Sequence record: PV400809.1
Reading direction: 5' to 3' (one strand)
DNA: 64,000 nt
Below are positions 8,455 through 17,446 of this stretch, piece after piece; the first letter of the stretch is position 1; every line of letters starts with the position of its first letter. The position numbers and the translations under genes were made by a program. The notes beneath the pieces were generated by a model, which was not told the DNA's origin, did not search any database, and saw nothing but the letters and a program-made list of their open reading frames with translations.

Positions 8455-8471
8455 GTAATATGGGTTTGAAA
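8455..8471 (-). promoter_or_regulatory. Early promoter candidate upstream of chmA
   Basis: TTTCAAA-CCCATATTAC; resembles the phiKZ early consensus TATATTAC with an upstream TTT element. Confidence 0.6.
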
Positions 8472-14800: not shown

Positions 14801-15763
14801 TTACAGCATGAAGCCCAGATCGTTCGATCCTTCCGAAATGTCCTTCTGTTGAGAGAAGTCAACGGCAGCTTGAGCTTGAACCGTTTCCAACCCTTCGATC
14901 TCTTTCTCCAGTTCTTCCAGGGCTTCACCGTGATCGAGGGTCACGTGCAGCTCTTTGATGTCCTCCGGACGATCACTGTTGGGGGAGAAGATACCCGTCG
15001 TCCGGTAAACCGATCCCATAAACCGAGGAACCACGTCATCGTTGTTCGGGTACAGGCTGGCGACCGAGACCGGTACCTTACCGGTATAGTCCGCTGCACC
15101 ATCCTGGTCGTAGAAATGAATACGACTCAACGCCGGCCTGGTTTTACCCCCCGCCGAGTAATTGAAGAAGCGTTTAATGTCTTCCTCATCGATTTCCGTA
15201 TTACCGGGATCAAAGAGGAGACTCAGGAGATTCAGTGAATCAATCGCCTGAAGGTTGACTTCCTTACGGGTCAGGTTCGGCGTATTGAGGAACTCCATGT
15301 AGCACACCGGACGGTTCAGCTGATTGGGTTGGCACTGGTTAGCAAAGGAACGGAGGGCATTGACTGCGTTTTCTTTATCCACCAGGGAGGTGTGTTCCGA
15401 GATCAGGCAGAGAATGACGTTCTTACCCGACTCGACCAGCAGGCGCAACGCAATCATCGCCATAACACGCCCAGTACCACCAGCGGTACTGGCTACGATG
15501 ATGTTGTGAACACCGGGACGGTGTTTCTTCAGGTTAGCGGCTACGAAGGGGAGGAGTTTATCGTAGTGCTTGGTGGAATCCTTACCACTCCCGTTCACCC
15601 CTTCGAGTTGCTCAATGGGGAACGCCGCCGTGAAGTTCTTATCACTGGTATCGAAGCCTACCATCCCCGCATCACTGTTCACACGCGTACGGGAATATTC
15701 TTTCAAACCCGCACCAATGTTGATACCCGCACCGCCCATGAGGTAGTATTGAATCTGAGACAT
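14801..15763 (-). CDS. phuZ: PhuZ/TubZ phage tubulin
   Basis: GGAGINIG N-terminal loop, STAGGTG tubulin signature, acidic C-terminal tail ending DLGFML; start reassigned to MSQIQYY. Confidence 0.9.
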   Translation of the reverse strand: MSQIQYYLMGGAGINIGAGLKEYSRTRVNSDAGMVGFDTSDKNFTAAFPIEQLEGVNGSGKDSTKHYDKLLPFVAANLKKHRPGVHNIIVASTAGGTGRVMAMIALRLLVESGKNVILCLISEHTSLVDKENAVNALRSFANQCQPNQLNRPVCYMEFLNTPNLTRKEVNLQAIDSLNLLSLLFDPGNTEIDEEDIKRFFNYSAGGKTRPALSRIHFYDQDGAADYTGKVPVSVASLYPNNDDVVPRFMGSVYRTTGIFSPNSDRPEDIKELHVTLDHGEALEELEKEIEGLETVQAQAAVDFSQQKDISEGSNDLGFML

Positions 15764-15860
15764 ATCGAATCGCTCTCTTTGGTTTACAGGGAAGTCATTA
15801 AAAAGGACTATTCTCCAATAGCCTGCTAATAATTTAGGTTTCAAATTATCTAGCGTAATC

Positions 15861-16062
15861 AAAAAAAAAAGACTAACGGGTGGGTAACCGCCGATATAAC
15901 CATAACACCACCCGTTAGCGCATCCAAGAGGATCAATAACGTTGTACCCTTACAGTGACCTAGAGAACCATGGCGTGGAAACAGGTCACTTTAACGGTAT
16001 AAGATATTCCCTCCTGGGTAAATAAAAAACAAAAGAAGTAAGACCTCCAGCTCTACATCATA
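15861..16062 (-). ncRNA. Candidate small RNA or attenuator upstream of phuZ
   Basis: No convincing ORF; AGTGACCT/AGGTCACT hairpin; 11-bp terminal stem CTAACGGGTGG/CCACCCGTTAG plus T10; early-promoter-like motif just upstream. Confidence 0.45.
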
Positions 16063-16080
16063 GTGACATAGAGCTGGAGG
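16044..16080 (-). terminator. Terminator hairpin overlapping an early-promoter-like motif
   Basis: 12-bp stem CCTCCAGCTCTA/TAGAGCTGGAGG, then TCTTACTTCTTTTGTTTTTTATT; contains CTCCAGC-TCTATGTCAC. Confidence 0.65.
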
Positions 16081-16271
16081 GGCGGAGCGTTTTGTAGGCA
16101 ACCCTCTCAAGCCTGACAGAATAGGCTTGGGCAGTTGAGGGGTGGTGGGTGTCTAACACTCCTAACCTTCCCACCAGGACCGGCGATGGAGTGAATGCAG
16201 GTCATCGGCATAAAATACCTGCACACTGTGGTTTCCATCGCCTACATTCTGAGTGTCTTACCCCCTAGGGA
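16081..16271 (-). ncRNA. Candidate structured RNA or long structured 3' UTR of the peptidase gene
   Basis: Consecutive stems GGCGATGGA/TCCATCGCC (with inner GCAGGT/ACCTGC), GGTGG/CCACC and CAAGCCT/AGGCTTG. Confidence 0.35.
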
Positions 16272-16820
16272 TTATTTTTCTGCCTTATCAGCGACCGGTT
16301 CAGGGCGCTTACTGGGGGTTGCTGGAATAGAAGGGAGTTCCCAGGTCTCAATACGACCACCGGAATAGACATCCAGCTTACAGGCCGCTTTAACTGCATC
16401 CACCGCGCTTTTACCAACCGCCATCACCGCACTGGCGTAAACGCTCCCTGATCCAATCGCAAACGGGGGTTGTACGCCCGACACCGTGAAAGCCATACTC
16501 CCGTCTCGTTGTTTATATGCTGAAACCATCCAAACATTACCCTGTTCACCCACACAGAGCAGATTCGAATCCCCAACGAGGTGGTCGGGTGCTTTGGTCT
16601 TAAAGGTAACACCCTCACTCAACAGTTCTTTAAAGGCCAACAGATCCGTCAGACTCCCCGACAAACCAAAACAGATAATACGGTCACCGTTGACACTCCA
16701 GTACTCTTCTTCCCCCGGTTCGTGGATTTTACGTTGCTCTCCGAGGTTGATCATATCGGCCCCGTTGACCACACGGGTATCCGCTGCCATTACACCGTCA
16801 CGATAAGCAATCGTTGTCAT
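16272..16820 (-). CDS. Ntn-hydrolase peptidase (HslV/proteasome beta-like)
   Basis: M-TTIAY N-terminus giving Thr1, plus AADT, GSGS and DVYSGG motifs. Confidence 0.85.
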   Translation of the reverse strand: MTTIAYRDGVMAADTRVVNGADMINLGEQRKIHEPGEEEYWSVNGDRIICFGLSGSLTDLLAFKELLSEGVTFKTKAPDHLVGDSNLLCVGEQGNVWMVSAYKQRDGSMAFTVSGVQPPFAIGSGSVYASAVMAVGKSAVDAVKAACKLDVYSGGRIETWELPSIPATPSKRPEPVADKAEK

Positions 16821-16892
16821 TACACACTCTTCCTCTTCTGGGTTTAACAAAACATATCAATACGAATAACCGTATTCTTTCATTACCCAATG

Positions 16893-16909
16893 ATAATGTA
16901 GAACTGAAA
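16893..16909 (-). promoter_or_regulatory. Early promoter candidate
   Basis: TTTCAGT-TCTACATTAT; 14/17 identical to the motif at 40681-40697. Confidence 0.5.
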
Positions 16910-16920
16910 TCCATTAACCT

Positions 16921-17446
16921 TAATTGCAATATTGCAGTATAAACCCTATACGCCGGCTTCCCTGTTCGGGAATGCCGGTCGGGGTAATTAACTTTGAAAG
17001 GGGTACTTCTTTAAGAGTAAATGAAATTTAGGGAATATTTAAAAGGTATTTTTCCCATTTTCATTTCCTCTTCATTTTTCCTTTTTTAAATAAAAAAGTA
17101 ATTTCCTATAATAATAATAAATAGTAAAGTTAAATTTTATTGCCTTATAAGCCCCTCCGGGGCTTATATAAAGAGCAAAAGCTATTACGGAGTAATAGGT
17201 TTTTCCTTCGGATTTTCTCTTTTCTCTTCTCTGGACTCTACCTTCGGTAGGGCCTCCTCCCCCAAGATTCTTTACTCCTTCACTCCACTCGCCGTAGGCT
17301 CATGTCGCTCAGTCCTAAAGAATCTTACCCCCTCCTCCAAAATGAGAATTGAGTAAGTGGAACATATAATGGAAACCGAATAATGAATTACTGGAAGATG
17401 TTATGATTCCCTAATCCTAGTTAACGGGTTTATATAAACCCGTTAA
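16921..17446. other. AT-rich non-coding region with clustered inverted repeats; candidate replication origin
   Basis: No ORF; A/T tracts; hairpins at 17146-17168, 17182-17198, 17238-17250 and 17264-17326; perfect 26-bp palindrome at 17421-17446. Confidence 0.45.

Follow-up and report, generated by a model that had tools for sequence, protein, structure and literature searches.

A conserved, structured non-coding RNA with a terminator and a probable promoter of its own in the spacer before phuZ of EL-like jumbo phages

The spacer in front of phuZ, the gene for the tubulin PhuZ, contains a conserved, folded non-coding RNA that carries its own terminator and, judging from a box at its head, probably its own promoter as well. 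The window analysed here, 64,000 nucleotides of sequence record PV400809.1, comes from an EL-like (Elvirus) nucleus-forming jumbo Pseudomonas phage, and the genes and RNA features described below lie on its minus strand. The interval 15861-16080, which a sequence-only reading had taken as one small RNA or attenuator driven by a promoter hidden in a terminator, is two separate things: the terminator hairpin (16080-16044) that closes an upstream RNA, unit 1 (approximately 16216-16021), and a small RNA gene, unit 2 (approximately 15998-15861), which corresponds to the candidate RNA of that reading. Among the explanations considered, we lean toward a stand-alone unit 2 RNA of about 135 nt, transcribed from its own TATR-type box at approximately A15998 and not forming a leader of phuZ.

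Over the 631 nt around the locus, ten Pseudomonas phages belonging to the EL group (Elvirus) are 96-100% identical to the window. The plus strand of EL corresponds to the minus strand of the window, and the RefSeq record of EL gives the order HslV-family peptidase (gp15), a spacer of 506 nt, a 'putative phage promoter', and tubulin PhuZ (gp16). In the window, the gene upstream of the spacer, hslV (homologue of the HslV-family peptidase, EL gp15), is located at 16272-16820 with its stop codon at 16274-16272, and phuZ (EL gp16) at 14801-15763 with its ATG at 15763. The 191 nt of the candidate region gave a folding z of -5.1 against shuffled sequences, and the 256 nt upstream of it a z of -5.9. 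The number of terminator patterns (three found versus 3.1 expected) was not above chance, and the hairpins are considered real because of their covariation in relatives, not because of pattern counts. Rfam 15 covariance models run on positions 15000-17000 at E <= 10 yielded only chance miRNA-like matches on the hairpin, and on ten relatives yielded nothing at the gathering score. A scan for tRNA and tmRNA found none, a sigma-70 scan of the spacer found no host-type promoter, and the conserved loops showed no repeats elsewhere in the window above chance. Both modules are single-copy in EL, where no further copies were detected.

The EL-like phages are too similar to one another for a firm covariation test; in eight aligned EL-like genomes, with the alignment read by eye, six of seven substitutions in unit 2 keep or improve pairing, the types being A-U to G-U, U-G to C-G, and G·G to G-C. 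Uncultured relatives were collected by a word-based protein search with PhuZ, to which their homologues are 44-67% identical; the search for related loci with PhuZ returned only EL itself from IMG/VR and nothing from the JGI metagenomes. An ORF-free gap precedes phuZ in the contigs of all relatives; its length is 385-561 nt in ten relatives, as against 1.2 kb in relative L024, and where PhuZ identity is 50-67% it measures 385-535 nt. Of ten metagenomic relatives inspected by eye, nine have the same invariant blocks within an ORF-free spacer. The blocks common to the aligned spacers are AGGTTAGGAG, GTTGCCTA(C/A)AAAAC, TAT(C/A)TTATACC, CACGCCATGGTTC, and the phuZ promoter motif ATTTnAnACCTAnATTAT. 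Each module closes with a hairpin and a U-run, and the phuZ promoter follows the second module. No spacer ORF is common to the relatives, in agreement with the sequence-only reading, which had seen no plausible ORF, and a search upstream of phuZ in related phages by homology and covariance model, which it had proposed as a check, did find homologous modules. The alignment of the spacers, the shared invariant blocks, and the absence of a shared ORF altogether indicate that the locus holds two homologous RNA modules. In relative L024, with a PhuZ of 44% identity, the ORF-free gap of 1.24 kb (L024:1257-2500) contained neither the invariant blocks nor a match to either covariance model.

Some database records place ORFs of 29-43 amino acids in the spacer, in the form of PHANOTATE-style annotations in MIZ-Pa99, HHBS47_1, and vB_PQ1. 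These ORFs, however, cross the terminator hairpins, are not preceded by Shine-Dalgarno sequences, shift in frame with the length of the T-run, and have no counterparts in the relatives, and the invariant blocks fall in different frames. That the spacer encodes small proteins is considered extremely improbable.

For unit 2, a covariance model was built from six EL-like sequences with a hand-drawn structure. This EL-only model matched five divergent relatives, and after rebuilding it matched relative L021, which was outside the training set, with E = 2e-12, and relative L023 weakly. The structure begins with a long hairpin (15945-15999), for which the covariance model and RNAalifold agree, consisting of a closing helix (15999-15992 with 15952-15945), a lower stem GTGACCTG/TAGGTCAC (15990-15982 with 15962-15954), and an apical stem of 3 bp (15978-15976 with 15970-15968) whose CGCCA loop is conserved, as is GGUUC on the 3' side. 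The lower stem is the 8-bp stem noticed earlier, counted here as nine pairs including the flanking A-T. After the long hairpin comes a small covarying hairpin, AUCC-UCUU-GGAU (15922-15933), and then terminator 2 (15861-15918), in which a stem of 11 bp (15918-15908 with 15883-15873) is followed by T10 (15870-15861). With eight G-C pairs among the 11 and UC plus U10 after the stem, terminator 2 has the anatomy of an intrinsic terminator. Compensating changes were found in 10 of its 11 pairs with 100% of the cells paired, and U-rich tails follow the stem in all relatives, the T-run varying from T7 to T10 among the EL-like phages. The distance from T10 to the ATG of phuZ (15763), previously put at about 100 nt, was measured as 98 nt.

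In the 13-row alignment of unit 2, which like the other alignments used for covariation counts was fitted to the model, 93.7% of the cells were paired and changes on both sides were observed in 27 of 35 pairs. None of 500 column shuffles reached any of the five measures, and when the partners were slid by 1-3 columns as a control, pairing dropped to 26-42%. RNAalifold applied to the same alignment predicted the same helices. When MAFFT and RNAalifold were applied to the raw unit 2 sequences, terminator 2 only was recovered, because the MAFFT alignment is not structural. G-U cells outnumbered A-C cells (39 versus 5), indicating that the RNA of unit 2 is read from the minus strand. The minimum free energy fold of the single sequence pairs AGGAGG with CCUCUU; this pairing was rejected, because the relatives keep the small local hairpin instead. 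The AGGAGG (16010-16015) indeed has no ATG, GTG, or TTG at normal spacing, as had been stated, but the suggestion that it binds RsmA/CsrA or ribosomes did not hold, the element being not conserved and located upstream of the RNA start in the best model. Neither several conserved GGA loops nor an Rfam match, as would mark an RsmY/RsmZ-like sponge, was found.

Unit 1 is a pseudoknotted RNA closed by a 12-bp terminator. Its model, seeded from EL-like sequences, matched ten relatives with E values from 1e-7 to 1e-20, and in its conserved core (16044-16175) 95.1% of the cells are paired, with 28 of the 30 pairs compensatory. The core includes the helix Ha (16175-16170 with 16149-16144), the helix Hc (16141-16137 with 16106-16102), the hairpin Hb (16129-16123 with 16114-16108), and a pseudoknot between GGAGUG in the Ha loop (16162-16157) and CGCUCC (16089-16084); its invariant blocks are AGGTTAGGAG and GTTGCCTA. 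The complementarity in the pseudoknot is lineage-specific (GGGAG/CUCCC, GGAAG/CUUCC, GGGGGAG/CUCCCCC). In a permutation test of cognate against non-cognate pairs, 4 of 2000 permutations reached the cognate value, and alternative pairings gave no signal. The EL-like phages carry an extra 5' segment of about 50 nt (16271-16217), which is missing from the relatives and could add two helices, GGCGAUGGA/UCCAUCGCC and GGGGGUAAGAC/terminator 1 tail. In vB_PQ1 (L002 1700-1780, corresponding to about 16130-16056 of the window), a tandem duplication of 77 nt lies inside unit 1, from the hairpin Hb into terminator 1, and phuZ is also split into pieces in this record; the duplication is probably a problem of assembly or sequencing quality, not biology.

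The non-terminator helices bear on the possibility that the two modules are transcriptional insulators only, that is, tandem terminators that keep phuZ under early control while the RNAs are without function. As in known intrinsic terminators and tandem insulators, GC-rich covarying stems with U-runs stand ahead of the next promoter, and two covarying terminators are located directly upstream of an early-type promoter in every relative. Relative L018 (PhuZ 53% identical; L018:2331-2401) fits the same idea: it is a natural deletion variant, a minimal version of unit 2, in which the long hairpin is absent and the box, the small hairpin, and the terminator are retained. Unlike plain terminators, however, the units embed these stems in a pseudoknot and a long hairpin with invariant loops. 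The helices Ha, Hc, and Hb, the pseudoknot, the long hairpin, and the small hairpin covary as well, and the loops and linkers AGGTTAGGAG, GTTGCCTA, and CGCCA...GGTTC stay invariant down to about 50% PhuZ identity, none of which a bare terminator needs. A purely insulating role is regarded as unlikely.

The terminator 1 hairpin (16044-16080) had been described as a 12-bp terminator, and the stem seen in the sequence-only reading stood: 12 Watson-Crick pairs are read directly (17 pairs by the terminator scan), and covariation supports all 12. The tail (16021-16043) is U-rich but interrupted, UCUUACUUCUUUUG..., with five U among the first eight nt; it is T-rich in all relatives, and in the EL-like phages the extra 5' segment of unit 1 offers it a pairing partner. 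The sequence TTTATT(A)C that follows hairpins resembles the usual terminator tail in the window phage.

A different origin of the transcript had been proposed within this hairpin, namely that TCTATGTCAC (16072-16063), lying in its 5' arm and loop, is a variant of the early promoter. In this model, transcription from the TATG of 16070-16067 would yield an RNA of about 190 nt in which the 5' arm of the hairpin is missing, so that it reads on to T10. TATG is indeed the minimal motif of phiKZ late promoters (PMC4666361), but it is common by chance, with 282 occurrences in the window at equal density in genes and spacers. The early-type motif of EL has no match with three or fewer mismatches inside 16044-16080, and words like TCTATGTCAC are not enriched in the window (39 found versus 53.7 expected). 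The loop containing TCTATGTCAC and the TATG differs in every relative despite the covarying stem, and the site has GC, not the AT of the lineage's box, at -7/-6. A start inside terminator 1 is thus very unlikely, and a length of about 135 nt is more likely for the RNA than about 190 nt.

A better candidate for the start lies at the head of unit 2, where a nearly invariant box, TAT(C/A)TTATACC (15996-16006), contains the promoter-like sequence AT-y-N-TAT-R (16005-15998). The box reads ATCTTATA in the window, ATATTATA in some relatives, ATACTATG in relative L025, and TTATG in MIZ-Pa99; most sequences have A at +1, with G in its place in MIZ-Pa99 and L025. A box of the same class, ATTTTATG (16209-16216), lies at the head of unit 1, for which G16209 is the candidate start. 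In nine relatives, a box such as ATTGTATG or ATTCTATG is found at the 5' edge of unit 1, 10-16 nt past the stop of the upstream gene. At this place the EL-like phages have GTGTG where the relatives carry TATG, and a TATG box occurs 15 nt further on.

The distribution of AT[ACT]N-TAT[AG] was then counted. Within EL 1-50 kb (L004), each of the seven matches lies in a spacer; one of them precedes gp7 by 72 nt, and another precedes the large terminase gene by 69 nt. In the window, where spacers make up 8.8% of the sequence, they contain five of the ten matches, all five on the minus strand. In nine relatives, 21 matches are intergenic versus two genic, a class that was defined in part from the sites it then explains, 17 of these 21 being pattern-defining sites. 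The first conserved helix of unit 2 starts directly past the final purine of the box. The near confinement of this box class to spacers, together with the beginning of the helix after the final purine, points to A15998 as the most likely start of unit 2 transcription and to an RNA of about 135 nt. The box was also considered as a middle promoter element of phiKZ type (AAanTTACc at -24), and this was dropped for want of a consistent upstream element across the sites.

In phiKZ, late promoters have the form T(-3)ATG(+1) and are read by the non-virion RNA polymerase, and early promoters have an AT-rich conserved block at about -10 (PMC4666361, PMC7598289); all four positions of TATG are needed for the late promoter in vitro (PMC4666361). 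The boxes of units 1 and 2 resemble these late promoters in abutting the start site and in ending with TAT plus a purine (PMC4666361, PMC7598289). They differ from them in an extended AT at -7/-6 and in the last position: the relatives carry TATG at unit 1, but the box of unit 2 reads TATA, not TATG, in most lineages, with TATG in two. The class of RNA polymerase that would serve unit 2 is inferred from this box.

Two side observations concern the same motifs. The density of TATAG in spacers is approximately nine times that in genes (spacers hold 16 of its 35 matches in the window and 18 of 37 in EL), and both TATAG and AT[ACT]N-TAT[AG] can be regarded as candidate signatures of late or middle promoters in the EL lineage. 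The gap of 620 nt upstream of hslV contains another AT-y-N-TATG box, ATTATATG (17363-17370), at a distance of about 540 nt from the gene, and similar boxes followed by TCTT are located about 370 nt before the next gene in L018:422-429 and L025:172-179; the box at 17363-17370 may start another non-coding or long-leader transcript.

The main rival to an own promoter is that unit 2 has none and arises by read-through of terminator 1, as a 3' extension of hslV or unit 1 transcripts that is perhaps trimmed to a 3'-derived small RNA. The box would then be a single-stranded RNA recognition sequence, a role suggested by its conservation, which is far stronger than is usual for late promoters of phiKZ type (PMC4666361). 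The interrupted tail of terminator 1 also suggests that termination may be leaky. RNA-library sequences bear on the same point. In four RNA-library runs, low-depth contigs cover 16060-16261, 16011-16233, 16163-16297, and 15884-16029, and these runs also contain pieces of hslV and phuZ; the contigs tell of presence only, without strand, ends, or level, and DNA carry-over is possible. One of them (16011-16233) crosses terminator 1, and another (15884-16029) begins upstream of the box, 31 nt upstream of the proposed start of unit 2, in keeping with a degree of read-through at terminator 1. Against a recognition sequence in a read-through RNA, the box class is almost exclusively intergenic and occurs also upstream of gp7 and TerL, the same class stands at the start of unit 1 in relatives, no RNA partner was found for the 5' half of the box, and the first conserved helix starts directly after the proposed +1. 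Read-through without an own promoter is taken as a real but clearly less probable alternative to the stand-alone RNA.

An early-type promoter of phuZ, ATTTGAAACCTAAATTATT (15828-15846), annotated as 'putative phage promoter' in EL, is kept in all relatives, in each case between T10 and the phuZ start. The early-type motif of EL, ATTTnAAACCTAnATTAT, was searched in the window at three or fewer mismatches and gave six matches, about the number expected by chance at this level: that of phuZ (15844-15829), 8470-8455, 16908-16893, and three within genes. The match at 8455-8470, upstream of the nuclear-shell protein gene, has two mismatches, and that at 16893-16908, upstream of hslV, has three.

The predicted 3' end of the unit 2 RNA lies 14 nt upstream of the phuZ promoter, indicating that this non-coding RNA stands alone and does not form a leader of phuZ. 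The alternative left open by the sequence-only reading, a stand-alone small RNA or an attenuator of phuZ, is thereby divided: a structured RNA ending at a terminator is retained, but the attenuator part fails on anatomy, since the phuZ promoter is downstream of T10. A strong terminator on the same strand about 100 nt before the phuZ start is what a leader governing read-through into phuZ would show, but there is the conserved promoter in between, and no antiterminator pairing that could replace the terminator shows conservation. A crude duplex test of units 1 and 2 against the phuZ leader revealed neither co-varying pairing nor preference for the cognate leader, and thus no lineage-specific complementarity. 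Furthermore, the Shewanella phage FishSpeaker lacks such a spacer, its hslV adjoining phuZ directly. Attenuation of phuZ by unit 2 appears highly unlikely, even slightly more so than a start inside terminator 1.

Taken together, the stand-alone RNA would be produced as follows. Transcription of unit 1 would close at the terminator 1 hairpin (16080-16044) and its U-rich tail. The unit 2 box (16006-15996), of the lineage's TATR-type promoter-like class related to the phiKZ TATG(+1) late promoters, would then start an RNA of about 135 nt with a long irregular hairpin bearing the CGCCA loop, a small hairpin, and a strong terminator (15918-15861). This RNA may act in trans, through the conserved hairpin loop, on a protein or RNA partner, and the two terminators may in addition shield the early phuZ promoter from upstream transcription. 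The analysis yielded no partner or target for the RNA.

Short, terminator-bounded, non-coding RNAs have likewise been reported from other giant phages, namely sRNA001-011 of 201phi2-1 and the phiKZ sRNA upstream of gp182, which is also predicted in EL (PMC11512511, PMC10914365); they were found by ONT-cappable-seq, and like unit 2 they are conserved in position beside a conserved gene (PMC11512511, PMC10914365). The published RNAs, however, are mostly derived from 5' UTRs by premature termination, whereas at unit 2 the promoter of the gene is downstream of the terminator, and the published conserved jumbo-phage sRNA is located at a tail gene, not at phuZ (PMC11512511). No description of an RNA upstream of phuZ or between hslV and phuZ, and no transcriptome of phage EL, was found in the literature searched.

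Beyond the EL lineage, RisingSun (L010:1845-2500) and the Vibrio phage phiKT1019 (L012:1861-2500) have strongly folding gaps of about 650 nt (z = -3.1 and -7.7, respectively) with a terminator before phuZ. In FishSpeaker, where hslV and phuZ adjoin (L011:2479-2494), a gap of 667 nt lies further upstream. Run over the complete records of RisingSun, FishSpeaker, and phiKT1019, the models of units 1 and 2 gave no homologue, and the likeness of the RisingSun and phiKT1019 gaps to the EL RNAs is positional.

To our knowledge, very little work has been done on non-coding RNAs in jumbo phages that form a nucleus, with few sRNAs reported and none with a known function. The locus before phuZ offers a clean comparative case, with two adjacent single-copy RNAs, strong covariation, one pseudoknot, and invariant loops. 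Its strong covariation, candidate start and stop sites, fixed place beside the early phuZ promoter, and the L018 variant make direct experiments possible. The analysis also corrects the database records that annotate small ORFs in the spacer, and puts forward AT-y-N-TAT-R as a candidate for an extended promoter box in the EL lineage, which is without published transcription start sites. A wider proposal, that nucleus-forming jumbo phages share a functional module in the form of a structured-RNA locus beside phuZ, in which the EL pair and the non-homologous RNAs of RisingSun-like, Vibrio, and other chimallivirus phages do the same job, is a speculative one that we rate as rather improbable. If it is true, the job could be that of an RNA cofactor or decoy connected with the switching between the phage's two RNA polymerases, or with the biology of the nucleus and spindle, and unit 2 would be among the first such phage RNAs that can be tested genetically.
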